A stretch of 63,539 nt of DNA, the filler included, from Pelomyxa schiedti (Eukaryota > Protista > Evosea): NCBI GenBank assembly GCA_020536535.1. It is 10 parts of 10 records of this genome, joined end to end, with 100 filler letters (N's around TTAATTAATTAA, not from the genome) between each part and the next. Parts side by side here need not be neighbours in the genome. Positions count along the whole stretch, not along the records: positions 12,786 to 26,235 come from JAHLWZ010000219.1; 9 more parts are not named here. The stretch is one strand, 5' to 3'. The notes beneath the pieces were generated by a model that had not been told where the DNA came from, ran no database searches, and saw only the letters and a list, made by a program, of their open reading frames with translations. Position 1 is the first letter of the stretch. Each line of letters opens with the position of its first letter. The translations under genes and the position numbers were made by a program. Of this stretch, positions 1-26,235 are shown in pieces.

Positions 1-564
1 TGGGCCCCCAGCAGCAATTGAGCAGCCTGAACGTGGCCCTCCGTGCACAGCCCAATCAGCGTCGCTTCCACCTCCTTCACCGCAACATCGCGGTTCTGGC
101 TTCTTTGAACCTTCTGCAGGGAGCGAGAGCCACCAGCGCTCGTCGTGGTTGTTGTTGTTGCCGTTGGTTGTTCCCTGTGGTTGGAGATCCACGCGATGCA
201 CGAGGGGGCGGGGGCCCGTGCCGCGAGCGTGATGACGCCGTACGTGGACCCTGGGTCGTTGCCCGTGGCCGTGCGGGGGATCGCGAGGACCCTGCGGCAG
301 GCGAGGGCCACGAGGGGGAACATCGCCTCGGCCACTGAGAACACGTCGACGTGGCCTCGGCACCACTCGGGGAATTTGTGACGTTGTTGTTTGCCAAAGA
401 AGTTGGTTTGGGGCGGCACGCCGGCGTCGAGCCAGCCGGGGACCACGACCATGTCCCACACAACTCGCGACAGGACCAGCACGCGATCGCGGTTGGCGCG
501 TCGTTGGTGGTCGTAGTGGCAGTCAGTCCCTGGAGTGGCTGTTGACGACATGATCGGTGCGAAC

Positions 565-13468: not shown

Positions 13469-14774
13469 TCAAGAGGAAGACATGGCAGTCGGTTGTGTGT
13501 GATTGTGGAATGCTGCTGCGATGTTTGCGAGGCATCTGGCTACGTGACCGGTAACGTCGTAGTCAGTTGCGGGAGTATTGTTTGTCACCGTGCTTGTTGC
13601 TGCTGTCGACGGGTCAGGTCTGGAATTTGTGAACACGATCTCGGCACACGTCGCAAACACTTTGTCAATTGCCGAGAATGACGGCCGATCGATTTCTGTG
13701 TGAGTGTGAGGAGGGACAGAATGAAAAGAAAAACGAACCGAGGAGTGAGAGACAGGACTCAACAACGACAGAGAACAGACCAACGCACGCACGGGGCACG
13801 TTGTTCATCTTGGGCTGCGAACGCAACGCGGAAATGATTGCAATCTTCCGGCTGAGGCACTCCACGACGGGATAATCCCCAACGTCATCACAAAGCCGGT
13901 CCAATTCTATGTGTGTGTGAGAGGAGTTATTGTTGTAAACAACAAACCGGCAATTTCCGGGGCTGAGATTGATGCCCGCTGGACCCGCATAAATTCTGTT
14001 ACTTGGGCAGCGGACTTCGGCATATTTACTGGTGGCACTTCGCCTTGAAGAAGCTCACTCACCAAAACTGCAAACTCCCACATGTCTCCTTTTGAATGTG
14101 TTTGTTGAGGTGTGATGCAGAGTTAATATTGAGATGAAACTCAACAACATCCAAATACCTTGAATTCCGTAGTGCCCAGTGTGCATCTGTGGTGGCAAGT
14201 AAATTGGTGTTCCAGCCCCTTTCGTAAAACTCCCAATCATAGCTGCTTTACTCCCGCGGCCGATTTGGTGCTGCTGGAGGGCTCTTGATACTCCTTCATT
14301 TTCAGTTGGATTGAGTTGAGTGTGTTGAGGCATGTGTGTGTCTGTGTCAGAAAGTACCAAAGTCAGTTATTTTTGGAGTTCCACATGAATCGAGGAGAAC
14401 ATTGTTGCTGGTCAGGTCCCGGTGCATGTAGTTCCTCCTGTACTTTTTTAGTATTATTGCATTTTTTTGTTTTTAACCCAATCAACGTAAATGATATTTT
14501 TTAAAAAAGAGTGTAAGAAGAATTGAAATTGAATGAAACCTGTGAAGTGCAGTCATTCCTTTGGCAATTCCGGAAGAAACTGCCACAACTTCGGTGAATG
14601 TCAAATCTTTCTAATAATTGTGTGTATGATAGATATAGATTCATATTTACAATTTGAGTGAGTCCAACCAAAAACAAGTGGGAGGAAGAGGGTGCAAAAA
14701 ACAAACATGTTGAAGGAGCTGCCTGAGACTCATTTCCATGAGTTCAGACACGATCCAGAGTGACCCTGTGCTCG
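13469..14774 (-). CDS. TKL-type protein kinase paralogue A, 3' part (5' lost in gap)
   Basis: Spliced reading LWIVSELMEMSLRQLLQH, GIAKGMTALH, YMHRDLTSNNVLLD, KITDFG, GTPIYLPPQM, DRPSFSAI. Highly similar to 20320-21650. Confidence 0.8.
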
Positions 14775-15408
14775 NNNNNNNNNNNNNNNNNNNNNNNNNN
14801 NNNNNNNNNNNNNNNNNNNNNNNNNNNNNNNNNNNNNNNNNNNNNNNNNNNNNNNNNNNNNNNNNNNNNNNNNNGTTCTCACAACAACACAGGTCATTGA
14901 AGATTCCATGACGAGGAGAAGGGGCACAGCGGTATGTTTCCATTTCTCTTCTCCATTTTTCTTTTTCGACTTCTCACATTTGAAAACCAGGTGGTATTGC
15001 CGATGTCAGCAGAATGTGTGTGTGTGCGGGTTGGCTCCATTCCACCGGTATTCCTCTTCTTGAGTCCCCCCAAATATATAACTCCCCTCTAGGTCCTTTT
15101 CTGCATTCAAGCTGTATGTCGGTATTGAGGCCCTGTGACTTTCAGCAATGGCATTTTCAGCAGCTCAGCCACTGGTAAGTTTCACCTTGTACAGTTGGTG
15201 GTGGACATGCCTTGACAGCCTGTTCACCATTGTAAATCCCCCTCTCCCTTTTCATCGCACCCCCACTCAAACATAATTATCCCATACTGACACCACTCAG
15301 GTACCCCAAGTGAGTGCGCCAGCGAGGTGGCCAACTGCACAGCTCACTTTTTTTCCTTGTACCCAATGTATTGAAAGTAAAAACACCCTTCTCGCCCACA
15401 CTAACAAG

Positions 15409-16080
15409 GAGACAACTGAAATGGGTTCAAGGGCATATATGTTCCGTCATCGAAAGATATTGCTGTGAAGACACTACAACCACCTGTTTTTTTTTTATAA
15501 GCTGAGCTTTACTAATACAAAACCGAAACAACTGAATTTCCAAGAAATTGCCGGGATTGCACTTGGTATTTCCAGGGGAATGGACAGCCTTCACGGGTAT
15601 TCTTAAAGTCCTATATCTCCAGTCCTAACGTAAAACAGACAAAATTACATGCACCGCGATCTTGCCAGCACTAATATCCTTTTGGATGCAAATGGAACTC
15701 CAAAAATATGTTATTTTGGTGTGTGTTTCTTCACTGTTCATTGTATAGGGGAAGGTGTGTCCCAAGTAATGAATTCTAAAGGCGTGAAATATCTGTAGTT
15801 TACATGTCTCCTCAGATGAGGACCGGCAATTACATTAATCCTCCATTCCTCACCATTTAATCCATTCAGGAAGTGGTTCAGCTTTGCCTGGAAGCCACTG
15901 AACCTGCCATTGTTGAATGTCTTGGCCAGAGGGATGCGTTCCTCCAAACAGTGAATCGTTAACGCACCTGACTCTCCCATTGTTTCTTGGTACCCTCTCA
16001 ATTTGGAATGTGTTTTGCACCCACCCTAAACCACCACTTTCAAACAGTGACTGAACAACTGTCCACAGTCATGTACTTGC
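15409..16080 (+). pseudogene. Degenerate TKL kinase remnant
   Basis: EIAGIALGISRGMDSLH and NYMHRDLASTNILLDANGTPKICYFG (DFG changed to YFG). Fragmented frames. Confidence 0.65.
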
Positions 16081-16189
16081 AAGAACTCTTGAAGGAAGTG
16101 GCACCTCACAGTTTACCCTCCTGTTAACTTGTTATGTATCCCCCACCCCATCAACACAGAACAAAAAAGCACTGCTTTCAGAGGTTTTT

Positions 16190-17961
16190 CTTTGTTGTCT
16201 ACAACAACAAACTGATTTTGTCCTTGATAAATGCACGACAACCAGGGCATTTCCTCATGAATGTGGCACACTGTTTGTTTTTTGTTTTGGTGTGTAGTCA
16301 GTTGGGATGTTAAGAAAAGAGAAGAGAATAACAAACAACACAGACCTGAGAGCACACTACAACGTGACTACAAGGATGAAACTGAACGTTTGGTGGCCTC
16401 TCATCACATTCCATGCAGACGTTGTGGTTGTTGTTCACCACAACTGAGGAAACAGATGTTTGTGTCACTGCAGTGACCGTGGCTGTGCATCCTGGGGTGT
16501 CAGCAGTGCGGCATGTTGCTGCTTGAGCCGGCTCAACATCACTCCAAGGCAATGGCAATGGGAAAGGGGGTGAGCTGGGGCGTGTGTTGTGGAGAATTTC
16601 TTCAATGTGAGCACCAAGAGGATCCCAGGTTGCAGTAACTATCGCCAACTGTGCGCCACTAATGAGATCCTTGATCTGAAATGACACAGTCCCCTCTATG
16701 GAGCAACTGCAGGGTGTAGAATAAACTCCTGTGCCTTCAGGTGACAGAAGATCTACTGTCGTATCTTGAATGCAGTTGCAGGGAGTATCCAAGTCAGAAG
16801 CACAAAACACCTGTTGGTTGATTCCCAGTTTGGTTGGAGTTTCGTTGTTAAGGGTGGCAACCAGGTGTGAGGGCTTGTGTGTGACCAGTCTTGTGTATTC
16901 TGACGAAAAGGTCTTCACCCTTTGAGATACAGTGTTGTACACCTTGAAGCCCTTCTGAAGTGAATGTATTGTTATCATTTCCTCAGCAGATACCCACAGC
17001 ATGTCAATTGGAGATGAATAAGGCAGGGGAACCCTTTTGGCAAACACGGCGGTGCCGCTTTCCAGACTATGAGGCAGGTCAACAAACAATACGTAGTTCC
17101 CCCGGAGCAGCTCCTTTACCATCACTGCCAACACATCTCCCTCGCCAGGTGGAAACCCACTTTCAATGAGATACAGGTCCCCCAGGTTTATGTCAAACTC
17201 AGGATTCTTGGGTTCACCATTCTCAATTTTCCACAGGGTAAGAATGTTGAACGAGCCATGCACCAGCCACTTGGAGTTGCAATACCATTCAGTGCTGTAA
17301 ATCCCTGATTGTAGGATACTGACAAACCGACCTTTGTTGTTCATTACACATTCTTCGTTTTTCAGAGCCACAACAAAGTTGCTGCTCCCTGGAATTCCGC
17401 ACTGTATTCCCTTCAACATCGGGGGGATCCAGCACGCGCAGCTCACAACTCCAAGCGTGGGTGACAGCTCCAAGGACACACAACATCTCACATTCCGAGT
17501 TGTATCACCATTGCCAACACTCTTGTCAACGAGGTCAAGAACGTGCCTTGTGGGACATACCACCCACCTCCTTCCAAGCATCTCCAGAACGTGGACAGAT
17601 CCCCTCAGCAGTTGTACGGCACAGCCGGGGCCACATCGGCGGTCAAAAAATATCCCACATGCCAAGGCAACGAACTGAGCGCGAGCGGTGACGGGTTGGA
17701 GGCTCGGCGTAGGGAGCCACTGTTGTTAGATACACCGACATTCTGACTTTTTGGCAAGGTAGTTGAAGGATCCATCATCAAGTTGTCAGTGAAACCTGGT
17801 TTTGTGGTGGTCATTTTGGGTTCATTTGTTTGTGAGGATATTATCATTAACATACCTTTGAGTGGTGATTCAAGAAGCATTCCTCCTTCATCAATCAGCA
17901 GTTGTGGTTTGATTGGGGCTCCTTCCAGATTCTGAATCAGCTTATGACTCTTCAAGTACAA
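16190..17961 (-). CDS. Lineage-family domain protein with C-terminal RING finger
   Basis: 451-aa ORF ending CMECDERPPNVQFHPCSHVVVCSQ; after an intron CATFMRKCPGCRA completes a C3HC4-type RING. 5' boundary uncertain. Confidence 0.65.
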
Positions 17962-18450: not shown

Positions 18451-18890
18451 TCACATTAGGATTCCCGCCAACGGAGCATGACCCCCAGAGGAGAGGGTCA
18501 GAACACCCTCGCCACAGCACCCCCAACCGTCCCCACGTTCTCTGTCTTGTTGAGGCTGGGTGAAAGTGCCTGCAAAGCTGTCACCGTTTGGCCACCTCCT
18601 CGTTCCCTTCTTTGGAACACCCAGCTCCCACCGTGAATGACGATCCATCCCTTGACCACACCTTTGTCCCTTGGCCGTTCTCCTTTCCACACACCCACTG
18701 GCCAACATACCTGTCACCGTTTGCCCACAGCCTCACGCCCAGACCATGGAACATGTCATCCTTCCACTCCCCAGACACCCCACCCCTGCATCTCGGGCCC
18801 CGTGATGGCGCCAAACCCCCACTGCCGTCGTAGGTGCACCGCTGCCGTGCCACTTGAACGTGCCCTTGCCGTCGCGCCTGCCGGGCGGAA
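18451..18890 (-). pseudogene. MORN-repeat coding fragment, frameshifted, abutting a retroelement
   Basis: GEWKDDMFHGLGVRLWANGDRYVGQWVCGKENGQGTKVW MORN motifs. Homologous to 59450-59700. Confidence 0.7.
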
Positions 18891-20260
18891 TAAAGAAGCA
18901 GCAACCTTAGTGCGATGTATCGAAAAACATTGGATTAATACTGAAATGTGTAACAGCTGGGGGTATTCATAGAAATGTGGTTACTGCATATCATCCACAA
19001 TCAAACGTTAAAATCCTGTTAAGAATGTGAAGCATTGTGTCGAGAAGTACATCGAAAGGAATCTGCAAGATTGGGATCAACAACTGCACTGGATTGAATT
19101 TGATATCAACACTACACCATCTGTTTTGACTGGAGTCACTCTGTTTTTCCTAGACCATATTCGTGATCCAAGAATACCTCTAGATACCTTGCTGTTAGAT
19201 TCATTCCCAAAAGAAGAGAAGGATAACATGACGAGAGCCCAAGAACAATTGTTGACTAGACAAAACATCCGGGAAATAGTTCGTGAACAACAAGCACAAG
19301 AAAAAGCCAGACAACGACCTGAGATGATGACAAGATTGAAGAAAGCTAGTGATGATTTAGAAATAGGTGTTCGAGTTTGGAGAGAGGTACCTAAAACTCA
19401 ACAACAATCTGGATATCCGAAGTATGAAGGACCCTATAGGATTGTAGCTAAGCCTACAGAGTTGACAAGAGAACTGTACATACCAAGTAGTAGCGCGCAT
19501 CCTATTGTGCATATTGATGCCTGAAGCCATACTTGGATAGTGACCTTCGTGTTAAAGCAGCTGAAGAAGAGCAACTTCCATTTGTACCTCAAGAACCGGC
19601 CAAAATCCCAGAACGAATTACTATGGATAAAATAAGGGATGGAGTGATCCAATATAGGTTGAAATGGAAAGGATTGTCACCAAAGAAGAAGTAGAACCGC
19701 GAATCATGAGAATCTACAAACTCAAACAAGCATGAAAGAAACTACTGCCGGTGAAACGACCACAAAAACCACGAGCAGTAAAACAACCCAACATCAAAAC
19801 GCTCACGTAAAAAGGACCAACAATCAAAACACAAACATTACTACAACTAAACAAACCATTACAACTGAAGTTTCAAATGACACCTCGCCACTGACACCCT
19901 CAATGACCAGATCTACACCGACACCGGAAACACGTCACCCTCCACATTGTCCAACGAGTTCTCCTATTTCACCGAACTTTTTTTAATATTTGGCTGAATA
20001 ATCAACGGACCGCACGCTGTCATTTTCGTTATCATCGCTCAGTATCAGGAGATCTGAGTGTTGCGAGGACGAAACAGGCTTAGCAGGAGATGTGAAGGGG
20101 TTTTCGTGCAACGGTGATGGCTAATGCTTATGTCAGCCTCCAGGGCATTCATGCTAAGCCCATTTGTTAAAGTAATTAACACAAAAATACCGGTTGTTTT
20201 GGAGTCGTATTGTTATACCTCCGAACATCACAAAACACCACACCCACACGTGTCAGCACA
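18890..20260 (+). mobile_element. 5'-truncated Ty3/Gypsy chromovirus-type LTR retrotransposon (integrase, GPY/F, chromodomain, PPT, 3' LTR 20091-20260)
   Basis: TAYHPQSN; DWDQQLHWIEFDINTTPSVLTG; KYEGPYRIV...HPIVHI; chromodomain-like PERI...GVIQYRLKWKG (~19600-19690). GAGGACGAAAC...AGCAGGAGA precedes a TGTG...CACA LTR. The flank after 20260 resumes homology with the 13408+ paralogous region. Confidence 0.85.
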
Positions 20261-20319: not shown

Positions 20320-23300
20320 TCAAGAGGAAGACCTGGCAGTTGGTTCTGTGTGATTGCGGTGGTCAGGGAATGCTGCTGCGATGTTTGCGAGGCACCTGGT
20401 TATGTGACTGGTAACGTCGTCGTCAGTTGTGGGAGTCTTGTTTGTCACCGTGCTTGTTATTGCTGCCGTTGTTGTTGCTGTCGACGGGTCAGCTCTGGAA
20501 TTTGTGAACACGATCTCGGCACACGTCACCAACACTTTGTCAATTGCCGGGAATGCCGGTCGATCGATTTCTGTGTGTGTGAGGAGGGACAGAATGGAAA
20601 GAAAAACGAACCGAGGAGTGAGAGGCAGGATTCAACAACGACAGAGAACAGACCAACGCACGCACGGTGCACGTTGATCATCTTGGGCTGCGAACGTAAC
20701 GCGGAAATGATTGCAATCTTCCGGCTGAGGCACTCCACGACGGGATAATCCCCAACGTCATCACAAAGCCGGTCCAATTCTGTGTGTGTGAGGAGTTGGC
20801 TTTTATTGTTGTAAACAACAAACCGGCAATTTCCGGGGCTGAGAGTGATGCCCGCTGGACCCTCATAAATTCTGTTACTTGGGCACCGGACTTCGGCATC
20901 TTTACTGGTGGCACTTCGCCTTGAAGAAGTTCACTCACCAAAACTGCAAACTCCCACATGTCTCCTTTTGAATGTGTTTGTTTATGTGTGATGTAAAGTT
21001 AATATTGAGGGAACTATCAACAGGATGAACACAACAACATCCAAATACCTTGAATTCCGTAGTGCCCAGTGTGCATCTGTGGTGGCAAGTAAATTGGTGT
21101 TCCAGCCCCATTTGTAAAACTCCCAATCATAGCTGGTTTACTCCCGCGGCCGATTTGGTGCTGGAGGGCTCTTGATACTCCTTCATTTTCAGTTGGATTG
21201 AGTTGAGTGTGTTGAGCATGTGTGTGTCTGTGTCAGAAAGTACCAAAGTCAGTTATTTTTGGAGTTCCACAAGAATCGAGGAGAACATTGTTGCTGCTCA
21301 GGTCCCGGTGCATGTAGTTCCTCCTGTGTTTTTTATTATTATTGCATTTTTGGTTTTTACAGCCAATCAACGGAAATGATATTATTTTTAAAAAGAAGAA
21401 TTGAAATTGAATGAAACCTGTGAAGTGCAGTCATTCCTTTGGCAATTCCGGAAGAAACTGCCACAGCTTCAGTGAATGTCAAATCTTTCTAATAATGTGT
21501 ATGATGATATAGATTCATATTTACAATTGAGTGAGTCCAACCAAAAACAAGTGGGAGGAAGAGGGTGCAAAAAACAAACATGTTGAAGGAGCTGCCTGAG
21601 ACTCATTTCCATGAGTTCAGACACGATCCAGAGTGACCCTGTGCTCGTGACGCAAGTTCCAAGGCATCTCACAATGTTTGGGTGCCTCAAGCTTGACGAA
21701 ACCTGGTGAGTTGATGGATGAATGTTTAGAACGCAAGATGATGAGAGACAAAACTCCGTATCACTCACCAGAGCTTCCTGCTGAAACCTGGTGATGTTGA
21801 ACTCAGACTTGATGGCGTCGTGAAGTGCTTTAATTGCCACAAACGTTGGTGTTCTTTCTGATGAGGATGATGATGAGGAGGAAGTGGTAATCACGTTGTG
21901 ATCATGGCAGGTGCACTTGAAAACAGTTCCATACGATCCGACTCCAAGTGTGGAAACAACTTTCAGGTCTTTCTCTTGGATTGACATGGTTGATTTGATT
22001 CGAACCTTGATTTGAACAACACCTCTGTTTCTGTTGCTGCTGCCGCTGTCTTGTTGTTGCTGTCGTTGTTGAATGTCACCCAAGGTAATGGATGAATCGA
22101 TCGGCAGCAGTTCCTCAGGTTTGTTGTTTTCTGAACCGAGAGTGAAAATCACTTGTTGTGTTGGTTCAACTCCAAACTTCCTTGAAACGATAAGCTTCAC
22201 AATCTTTTTTGAACAAAACAACCAGTTAGAAACATCGCAAACAACGAGAAAAAAAGGGAGGTGGGGGAAGCTTCAAAAAGAAAAGAAAGGGCAGAGCTTC
22301 AAGAGAGGAAAGCACCATCTGAAGGGGACAGGATCCACACACAATTTCATCAAAAGAGGGAAGGTCCTCAAACGTGATCCTGAGTTGCGATCGCTTGCAG
22401 CCGTTGGTCTTATTGTTTTCAGGGAGAATGTTGCGCCACGTGCCTTCTCCTTGTTCAACATGTGACATAACATGATTTGTGTCTGTATTGACAGAATTAG
22501 AATTGTTGGTGTGGTGCCGTGTTATTATATGCTGCATGTATGTGGGTTGAGAAAAAAAGGAGGGGATGCAGTGTGTTGAGTGGGCAGCAAGCACAAACAG
22601 TGTTGGAGATCACGAAATCTTTGTTGGTCAGATGCTGTCTCATCACAAAACCTTTTCAGGTTCTGGGCACTTTCTTCCTCCAATGTTGTTATGTGCGCCT
22701 CCAGTTCCATGAGTTCTGTTTTTGGAAAAAGGGGAAAAAAAACCCAGTGAGGAGGGAGAATGATGAGTTCAACTGGAGGAGGAAGGTGTGTTCAAACCCT
22801 TGTTCTTTGCAGTCATGTCGGACACAGTTTTTTCTTGCAAGCTTTGGAGCTCCATCTGTGTGGATGCATGTTGTTAAGAGATTACTTATTGTCAAGGCAA
22901 ACAACAACACACCTCTGAATTATGTTTCCCTTGATGATGTGCACATGAGATGATGAGAAACGCAAAAAAGAAGAAGGAAGGAGGAAAGGGGAGCACAAAC
23001 ATTGTTGTTGAAGCTCACGAAATCTTTGTTGGTTGTCTGTTTCTCTTTCTTCATAGATTCGTTTAATTTCTTTAATTCTTTGTTGGGTGGTCGCATGTTG
23101 TTTTCTTTCTTCATGGAGAAGATTCAGATTCTTTGTGTTTTCTTCCTCCAATTGTGTGATTCTTGCCTTCAGTTCTGTGATCTCATCTGTTGAACACAAA
23201 GTAATTTGCATTTTCATTTGAGGAAGGGGTTTTTCACTAAACTCTTCAGCTGCTTCGCCTCGATTTCCCAGCAGTCTCTCTCTTGTTTTCTGACGTTGTT

Positions 23301-23737
23301 GATGTCATCACCTTCGTCAAGAGCTTTGGGGAGCACTTTGCTGGTCGCCATTGGTGTGGTTGGTGATGGATCGTTTGTAGCAGAGGCCGGTCTTGGATGT
23401 GGTTGTTGGGATGTTTTGGGAGAGGTGACTGCCTGCGTTATTGCTGATGTTGTGGCTGTACACACGGCTTGGAACACTTGACGCACTTTATCATTTTTCG
23501 AGCTCTCCAGTGCTGTTTTTCCCTCCTTGTTCTGTGCCGACAGGAAAATTAAAACACATATCAATCAAATAGGGGGAAAACAACCTTGATGTGAGTGCTG
23601 ATACCCACACAAGATAGAAGTTGTTTCACAATTGCAACGTTTCCTTCTCTGCAGGCAAGATGAAGCGTGGTCTGAGAGAGAGGGAGACGAAAATTAAGTT
23701 TTGTGTCAAGCATCAAATAAAGGGTACATACATCACC
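20320..23737 (-). CDS. Ankyrin - coiled coil - ubiquitin-like(?) - TKL kinase (paralogue B); 5' end runs into the microexon array and gap
   Basis: Exon 23585-23671 TTLHLACREGNVAIVKQLLSCVGISTHIK, then NKEGKTALE. Coiled-coil exons ELKARITQLEEEN and ELEAHITTLEEES. Kinase LGVGSYGTVFK, VAIKAL, LRHPNIVRCLG, HRDLSSNNVLL, KITDFG, DRPAF. Confidence 0.85.
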
Positions 23738-23934
23738 CTGCCAATTTGAAAGAGACCCCAAAAGATATGTGAGGAACAACAAGAACAAGAAAAAAGGTCA
23801 TACTTCCTGAAAAATAAGAAGGTGAGCACAAAGATTCAAGGAGTGGAGTTCATACAATCTGCAGCAGTGAAAAAATAGCATAAAAATTGCGGAAAGTTAG
23901 AACAAAAAGCTGCCAGGGAGTGGGTACTTACTCC
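23732..23934 (-). other. Four non-repetitive phase-0 microexons: GGA (23932-23934), ATT (23856-23858), GAA (23804-23806), GGTGAT (23732-23737)
   Basis: Minus strand reads AAG|GGA|GTAAGT, CAG|ATT|GTATGA, CAG|GAA|GTATGA, CAG|GGTGAT|GTATGT. Separated by pyrimidine-rich introns of 73, 49, 66 and 60 nt. Product G-I-E-G-D-T aligns with N-K-E-G-K-T of the next ankyrin repeat. Confidence 0.75.
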
Positions 23935-23959
23935 CTTTATGGTATGAAAAATGATATAA

Positions 23960-25509
23960 AGTGTAACAGAGAGAAATTGAAGGTCAGAAATTGATGAATG
24001 AAAAGGGGTTGAGGAGCAGTTACACACTCGCTGAGTTTATCACAGAGCAAAGCAAAGAGAGAGAAATTGAAGCAAGTCAACAAAAAGGGTTGGGGAGCAG
24101 TTACACACAAACTAAACATTCCATAGAGAAGGAAAGAGAGAGAAATTGAAGCAAGTCAGAAATTGATGAATAAACGCAATAAAACAAGGTTGAGGAGCAG
24201 TTACACACATCCTGAGTTTATCACAGAGCGAAGCAAAGAGAGAGGAATTGAAACAAATCAGGAATTGATTAATAAACGCATTAAAAAGAGTTGGGGAGCA
24301 GTTACACACAAACTAAACATGCCACAGAGTGAAGCAAAGAGAGAAAAATTGAAGCAAGTCAGAAATTGATGATTAAACGCAATAAAAAAGGGTTGGGGAG
24401 CAGTTACACACTCGCTGAGTTTATCACAGAGCAAAGCAAAGAGAGAGAAATTGAAGCAAGTCGGGAATTGATGATTAAACGCAATAAAAAAGGGTTGGGG
24501 AGCAGTTACACACAAACTAAACATGCCACAGAGTGAAGCAAAGAGAGAGAAATTGAAGCAAGTCAGAAATTGATGAATAAACACAAGAAAAGGGTTGGGG
24601 AGCAGTTACACACTCCCTGAGTTTATCACAGAGTGAAGCAAAGAGAGAGAAATTGAAATAAATCAGAAATTAGTGATTAAACAGGGTTGGAGAGCAGTTA
24701 CACACTGCCTGAGTTTATCACAGAGCAAAGTAAAGAGAAATTGGGCAAGTCAGAAATTGATGAATAAACACCATAAAAAAGGGTTGGGGAGCAGTTACAC
24801 ACAAACTAAACATGCCACAGAGTGAAGCAAAGAGAGAAATTGAAGCAAATCAGAAATTGATGGTTTTCAAGTTGGGGGGCAGTTACACACTCCCTGAGTT
24901 TATCACAGAGCAAAGAGAGAGAAATTGAGGCAAATCAGAAATTAATTAATAAACACAATAAAAAAGGGGTGGGGAGCAGTTACACACTCACTGAGTTTAT
25001 CACAGAGTGTAGGAAAGAGAGAGAAATTGAAGCAAGTCAGAAATTGATGATTAAACGCAATAAAAAAGGGTGGGGAGCAGTTACACACAAGCTAAACATG
25101 CCACAGAGTGAAGGAAAGAGAGAAAAATTGAAGCAAGTCATAAATTGATGATTAAATGTAATAAAAAAGGGGTGGGAGCAGTTACACACAAACTAAACAT
25201 GCCACAGAGTGAAGCAAGCAGAGAGAAATTGAAGCAAGTCATAAATTGATGATTAAACGCAATAAAAAAAGGTTGAGGAGCAGTTACACACATCCTGAGT
25301 TTATCACAGAGCGAAGCAAAGAGAGAGAAATTGAAGCAAGTCAACAAAAAGGGTTGGGGAGCAGATACACACAAACTAAACATTCCAGAGAGAAGGAAAG
25401 AGAGAGAAATTGAAGCAAGTCAGAAATTGATGAATAAACGCAATAAAACAAGGTTGAGGAGCAGTTACACACATCCTGAGTTTATCACAGAGCGAAGCAA
25501 AGAGAGAGG
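23960..25509 (-). repeat. Tandem array of 16 units (~80-102 bp), each an intron plus a 3-nt microexon; two unit subtypes
   Basis: Every unit reads (minus strand) polypyrimidine...AAACTCAG or ATGTTTAG | NNN | GTGTGT. AG and GT are invariant in all 16 units, while NNN takes 7 values. The array is cut by the gap at 25510. Confidence 0.9.
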
Positions 25510-25609
25510 NNNNNNNNNNNNNNNNNNNNNNNNNNNNNNNNNNNNNNNNNNNNNNNNNNNNNNNNNNNNNNNNNNNNNNNNNNNNNNNNNNNNNNNNNNN
25601 NNNNNNNNN

Positions 25610-26235
25610 TTGAAGAAGTTCACTCACCAAAACCGCAAACTCCCACATGTCTCCTTTTGAATGTGTTTGTTTATGTGTGATGCAGAGTTAATATTGAGTG
25701 AACTATCAACAGGATGAAACTCAACAACATCCAAATACCTTGAATTCCGTAGTGCCCAGTGTGCATCTGTGGTGGCAAGTAAATTGGTGTTCCAGCCCCT
25801 TTTGTAAAACTCCCAATCATAGCCGGTTTACTCCCGCGGCCGATTTGGTGCTGCTGGAGAGCTCTTGATACTCCTTCATTTTAAGTTGGATTGAGTTGAG
25901 GCATGTGTGTCTGTGTCAGAAAGTACCAAAGTCAGTTATTTTTGGAGTTCCACAAGAATCGAGGAGAACATTGTTGCTGCTCAGGTCCCGGTGCATGTAG
26001 TTCCTCCTGTTTTTTTAGTATTATTGCATTTTTTGTTTTCCAGCCAATCAACGTAAATGATATTTGTTTAAAAAGAGTGCAAGAAGAATTGAAATCGAAT
26101 GAAACCTGTGAAGGGCAGTCATTCCTTTGGCAATTCCGGAAGAAACTGCCACAACTTCGGTGAATGTCAAATCTTTCTAATAATTGTGTGTATGATAGAT
26201 ATAGATTCATATTTACAATTTGAGTGAGTCCAACC
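25610..26235 (-). CDS. TKL kinase paralogue C, internal fragment
   Basis: Near-identical to 20930-21545 (HRDLSSNNVLLD, KITDFG). Bounded by a gap and a linker. Confidence 0.75.

Follow-up and report, generated by a model that had tools for sequence, protein, structure and literature searches.

In Dscam, tandem-duplicated cassettes diversify a recognition surface by splicing, each exon encoding part or all of a domain and one exon being chosen per cluster. The arrays of Pelomyxa schiedti described here resemble Dscam in having duplicated cassettes at a putative recognition surface, but their cassettes are single codons. Similarly, exon shuffling in brown algae concerns expanded sets of repeat-domain receptor candidates with exon-level turnover and diversifying selection; there, however, an exon is a whole repeat and DNA recombination has been proposed, whereas the Pelomyxa exons are single codons within one loop. 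The micro-exon genes of Schistosoma encode small, mostly secreted proteins, with micro-exons forming up to 75% of the coding sequence (PMC4015677). They share with Pelomyxa the runs of symmetric tiny exons that can be skipped with the frame kept, and differ in that the Pelomyxa tiny exons, nearly all of a single codon, form one loop of a large kinase. DARPins and LoopDARPins (PMC9611651) likewise carry variation on the ankyrin binding face and an enlarged hairpin loop, although as engineered libraries they offer an analogy only.

The closest system is the nank (NACHT-ANK) NLR family of the truffle Tuber melanosporum, to which papers citing its description attribute tens of codon-sized, alternatively spliced exons (Iotti et al., 2012, PMID 22289772; PMC4986451, PMC3689799, PMC10197012, PMC13449251). 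This precedent overturns the claim, made in a sequence-only reading of the present locus, that no single-codon cassette array of this kind had been described. Nank and Pelomyxa have in common an expanded ankyrin gene family and many codon-sized exons, which in nank have been described as a diversification mechanism; the two differ in domain (NACHT versus TKL kinase), in the amoebozoan host, and in that splicing is reported for nank and inferred for Pelomyxa. No NACHT domain was found in a scan of the window exons or in the paralog models, which show only ankyrin and kinase families, and the gene 5′ ends that could be read in paralogs contain ankyrin exons only. The Pelomyxa genes are thus not members of the nank family, but probably work like them. 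That ankyrin genes are concerned in two such distantly related organisms speaks for convergence, and the Pelomyxa array would be a second case, after truffle, probably of independent origin. Our literature search found no paper on amoebozoan microexon arrays. If spliced as proposed below, the array would represent the second known codon-by-codon diversification of a protein, and the first outside fungi in the literature searched; it also offers a concrete way into the question of whether unicellular eukaryotes assemble repertoires of variable receptors.

Layout of the array and its paralogs

The window analysed here is a stretch of 63,539 nucleotides, filler included, in which the array lies on the minus strand, within an ankyrin-kinase gene (Table 1). 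A pattern scan of the window piece containing this gene identified 16 tandem units of about 80–100 nt each, and every unit consists of a GTGTGT donor, a pyrimidine-rich body, CAG or TAG, and then exactly 3 nt, with introns of 78–99 nt. All 16 triplets previously proposed to lie between acceptor and donor were recovered with the same coordinates and order. A CTGAY motif some 48 nt before the AG is a putative branch point. There are two unit types in rough alternation, with codons for D, F, L, G, A and R and one stop. Matches to YAG-NNN-GTRWG, counted on both strands, numbered 18 within the array and loop versus 2 in the rest of the piece. Downstream, the GGA, ATT, GAA and GGTGAT exons were recovered at 23934–23732, and lead as proposed into the phase-0 ankyrin exon at 23671–23585, bringing the tiny exons of the window loop to 20. 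The sequence-only reading had taken these exons as a continuation of the pattern in unique DNA; the DNA is indeed non-repetitive, but G, I, E and GD constitute a conserved frame common to paralogs. The assembly gap next to the array should, judging from the layout of the paralogs, hide ankyrin repeats 1 and 2, the first tiny exons and possibly further array units.

Table 1. Coordinates of the ankyrin-kinase gene features in the window
Feature	Position	Strand	Remarks
Assembly gap	25510..25609	.	
Tandem array, 16 units of intron + single-codon exon	24028..25509	-	5′ end cut by assembly gap
Array triplets 1–8		-	GAT 25473, TTT 25373, GAT 25292, TTT 25190, CTT 25089, TGA 24988, GGA 24891, TTT 24803
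Array triplets 9–16		-	GCA 24706, GGA 24614, TTT 24514, CGA 24412, TTT 24310, GAT 24209, TTT 24109, CGA 24028
Sixth array exon, TGA stop	24988..24990	-	an all-exon transcript would terminate here
Frame microexon GGA (Gly)	23932..23934	-	AAG acceptor, GTAAGT donor; conserved
Frame microexon ATT (Ile)	23856..23858	-	conserved
Frame microexon GAA (Glu)	23804..23806	-	conserved; Gln or Ala in some paralogs
6-nt exon GGTGAT (Gly-Asp)	23732..23737	-	G-x of ankyrin hairpin; in all intact loops
87-nt helix exon, ankyrin repeat 3	23585..23671	-	phase 0 at both ends; Pfam Ank, E 3.6e-5
Six exons: start of last ankyrin-like unit, Thr/Pro-rich linker, probable coiled coil	22316..23531	-	open, compatible phases
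Eight exons: spacer region and TKL-type kinase domain (HRD, DFG) to stop codon	20320..22203	-	all open

The remainder of the gene appears intact. Its 15 exons from repeat 3 to the stop at 20320, checked and searched one by one and unjoined, have canonical splice sites, compatible phases and no internal stops. With its ankyrin repeats placed before a kinase domain in which HRD and DFG are intact, the gene has the domain order of an ankyrin-TKL kinase. The tiny exons add up to about 60 nt, versus about 2.3 kb of ordinary exons including the kinase domain. The gene has small exons outside the loop as well, as in the coiled-coil region, where an ordinary exon of 17 nt (22913–22929, minus strand) has a GTGTGT donor.

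A protein homology search revealed kinase homologs in Pelomyxa schiedti only, with about 20 close paralogs. The array layout is repeated at 12 further P. schiedti loci, giving 13 loops with the window, and it lies between ankyrin repeats 2 and 3; the proposal that the units feed the β-hairpin of an ankyrin-kinase was thereby supported, in the window and in the paralogs, as regards a hairpin between two ankyrin repeats. The family plan begins with a repeat-1 exon and a repeat-2 exon, both ending in phase 0, continues with a single-codon exon (mostly Ile), a 9-nt exon G-x-x and the block of single-codon units, and ends with the G, I, E and GD exons before the repeat-3 exon. The number of tiny exons per gene ranges from 4 to 25. 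In twelve loops, a scan that admitted only lengths of 3, 4, 6 or 9 nt counted 175 tiny exons, comprising 150 of 3 nt, 15 of 6 nt and 10 of 9 nt. The shortest loop, in an ankyrin-only gene (L008 3736–4264), has the exons D, H, F and GD, that is, a canonical D-x-x-G-x-T hairpin before the TALH motif; this exact reconstruction is the clearest sign that the single-codon exons are translated. A kinase gene (L013) has N, N, N, A and GD plus one dead unit, its four live codons and GD being one above the canonical hairpin.

No tiny-exon runs were found in the other ankyrin-kinase subfamily of the same clusters, a protein search with the reading frame around the window ankyrin exon gave no match, and a metagenome scan with the repeat-2 alignment returned a single unrelated, intronless ankyrin gene and no relative outside P. 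schiedti. Decay was also seen among the copies. At L008 7440–8213, a copy of the minimal ankyrin gene has its repeat exons fused by deletion, has lost the splice sites of one tiny exon and has its loop interrupted by an inverted segment. The paralog at L002 7670–8990, possibly a pseudogene or an assembly error, has a repeat-2 exon that is apparently frameshifted and an Ile exon that has lost its acceptor, yet has the most diverged array.

P. schiedti has an intron-rich genome assembled from amplified single cells (PMC8887013), and the window array adjoins a gap, so we considered whether it could be an artefact of whole-genome amplification or of collapsed repeats. The read comparison, made with assembled contigs, covers the DNA outside the tandem array; over 23739–24042 the DNA contigs match without differences. 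Because several other contigs carry whole arrays that no gap interrupts and that have unit variants of their own, an artefact is very improbable, and any error should be confined to the number of units or to individual bases. The array is a real, family-wide and unannotated structure.

Splice signals and turnover of the array codons

The exon sizes and the spacing of splice signals agree with the proposal that the array exons are symmetric and keep the frame. When the distance from each donor-like hexamer back to the nearest AG was taken in 12 loops, for cases within 12 nt and with no length filter, it was 3, 6, 9 or 12 nt in 134 of 140 cases versus 195 of 550 in control DNA, although the units are related by duplication and the counts are not independent. 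Five of the exceptions lie at distance 1, which equals the number of CGT and TGT codons, and these offer a second donor register. Public paralog models yielded 97 introns with a median of 69 nt, in which GTGTGT ranks second among the donors and AAG is frequent as an acceptor; by these statistics the array introns look like ordinary P. schiedti introns. Of the 108 array codons, 104 end in T or A and none ends in C or in AG, while ordinary exons of these genes mostly end in G; this bias may serve to adjust how strong the donor is or to prevent exons of zero length. At L001 4755–4775, in an array adjoining a gap, the loss of a donor base in one unit leaves an exon of either 4 nt (frameshifting) or 6 nt (in-frame). 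Three 6-nt units derived from damaged donors were set aside as coding evidence, since a GTGTGT donor that loses one base will in any case still offer a GT in frame.

The array codons also look diversified, as had been claimed. Within-gene spanning trees built on intron sequence gave 0.41 differences per site for array codons versus 0.11 for introns, about four times faster, and 64 intron triplets held out as a control never reached as high (mean 0.13, maximum 0.27). Among recent duplicates, the values were 0.38 and 0.04, a contrast inflated by tree building. The frame exons G, I, E and GD behave in the opposite way, with a between-gene difference of 0.044 per site versus 0.167 for their introns. 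Residues F, Y, G, L, R and D are preferred among the array codons; F, Y, W and H make up 35%, and Lys is absent. All 60 codon changes scored in arrays alter the residue. The absence of synonymous changes (0 of 28) was dropped as evidence because a splice constraint on the third base can explain it, P being 0.08–0.19 once that base is restricted as such a constraint might require. Stops number 1 in 108 array codons versus 7.7 expected from base frequencies, a depletion that is weak (P=0.09) once duplicates are collapsed. The nearest relative of 70 of 96 units lies in the same gene, suggesting that arrays expand and homogenise gene by gene.

These patterns bear on the idea that only the frame exons are used, and that the middle block is an intronic minisatellite grown from one real unit and wholly skipped or rarely used. 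Tandem Repeats Finder indeed classes the window array as an ordinary minisatellite of about 100 nt, recent duplication by itself preserves splice motifs, a few units of older arrays (L009, L002 and L013) have lost AG or GT, and one window unit is a stop. However, AG, three bases and GT are kept in nearly all units of old arrays whose introns differ by 30–40%, and variation along the unit peaks at the three exon bases with both flanks fixed, the opposite of the pattern expected of a neutrally drifting minisatellite. We regard such an unused block as improbable.

Transcripts and proposed splicing of the loop

Four runs of one study contain this stretch, three of which (X1–X3) cover introns and look like DNA. 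The fourth (X4) is RNA-like, with a joint that has intron ends at 21322–21417, no depth over 22880–22998 or 23713–23950, and two records that match only as far as the acceptor of the exon that follows repeat 3; from this joint, the depth gaps and the match ends, members of the ankyrin-kinase family are probably expressed and spliced. None of the contig matches listed spans the loop. Annotation commonly misses tiny exons (PMC8831610), and the array exposes such a blind spot: no public protein model of the subfamily includes the loop, each model checked starting at repeat 3 or having spurious upstream sequence. The public model of the window gene begins at ATG 23733, a start that we reject because this ATG overlaps the conserved Gly-Asp exon and its donor. 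A position of the array in a 5′ UTR is likewise rejected, given the open repeat-1 and repeat-2 exons upstream in complete paralogs. The tiny exons are very probably real coding exons that public gene models have overlooked.

We consider it rather probable, on the strength of sequence comparison, that the array encodes a hypervariable ankyrin loop, and that combinatorial splicing of its cassettes yields many loops per gene; the truffle precedent supports this reading by showing that splicing of this kind is feasible. In the DNA, ordinary short introns divide the repeat 2–repeat 3 hairpin into tiny in-frame exons. Frame exons conserved among the genes (I, G-x-x ... G, I, E, G-D) surround a block of single-codon cassettes, which each gene has enlarged by tandem duplication of intron plus codon, with codons changing much faster than introns. 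Such short introns would be recognised across the intron, a donor would pair with one of several later acceptors, and different subsets would be skipped; since donors and acceptors are near-identical and every cassette keeps the frame, the spliceosome could skip varied subsets in frame. For the visible exons of the window gene, subsets allow at most 110,968 stop-free loops, or at most 190 if three codons are kept.

In ankyrin repeats, the hairpin is part of the surface that contacts binding partners, and the loops tolerate insertions (PMC9611651). With such splicing, one gene would produce loops varied in length and sequence on the ankyrin binding face. The frame of G, I, E and GD common to paralogs suggests that the loop may be a lengthened hairpin whose tip varies, and not a canonical hairpin in which every residue is freely chosen. 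The ankyrin-TKL kinases of P. schiedti are probably cytoplasmic sensors, and their architecture and the analogies above suggest that the loops might bind diverse non-self ligands, with the kinase relaying the signal. It is possible, if short of probable, that a receptor repertoire based on splicing has arisen independently in this free-living amoeba, in which each ankyrin-kinase gene writes a variable binding-face loop from single-codon exons, with up to about 10^5 stop-free peptides in the window gene and perhaps different sets in different cells, recognising prey, symbionts or parasites.

Diversity could instead reside at the DNA level, between genes and alleles, if all tiny exons were included to give one long loop per gene; unit gain, loss and mutation would then drive diversity and the introns would act as recombination spacers. 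The rarity of stops and the frame kept throughout accord with full inclusion, as do the conservation of the frame exons as a set, the varying unit number among genes, the relatedness of most units within their own gene, and the tolerance of ankyrin loops to insertions. However, full inclusion would make the window gene null because of the TGA exon, at odds with the intact state of the remaining exons; error-free inclusion of 15–25 successive 3-nt exons with near-identical sites seems unlikely, and in the truffle precedent the splicing is alternative. A TGA exon in a gene with 15 intact downstream exons implies that the full protein requires skipping, although this TGA could be an assembly error or the mark of a dead allele. 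On balance, we hold constant inclusion to be unlikely. The combinatorial splicing proposed here is testable with public RNA reads (BioProject PRJNA672820).

Neighbourhood of the window gene

Two further paralogous kinase 3′ parts lie at 25610–26235 and 13470–14774 (minus strand), each adjoining a gap of 100 N, so that the window piece holds a tandem cluster of three kinase copies, whose order across gaps may be a scaffolding guess. A protein of contig JAHLWZ010000219.1 (GCA_020536535.1), from which the piece comes, matches the third kinase copy at 96–100%. A diverged kinase gene is found on the opposite strand at 14908–16127 (+), with a public model of 206 aa and 45–58% identity to the family over short stretches. 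An open frame of 451 codons (16310–17665, -) resembles a RING domain weakly at its C-terminus (E 0.11) and matches no further Pfam family, and a MORN-repeat fragment is located at 18581–18904 (-; E 6e-13). In addition, a remnant at 19027–19700 (+) resembles the integrase end and the chromodomain of an LTR retrotransposon, with a weak Tf2-type match (E 0.14).
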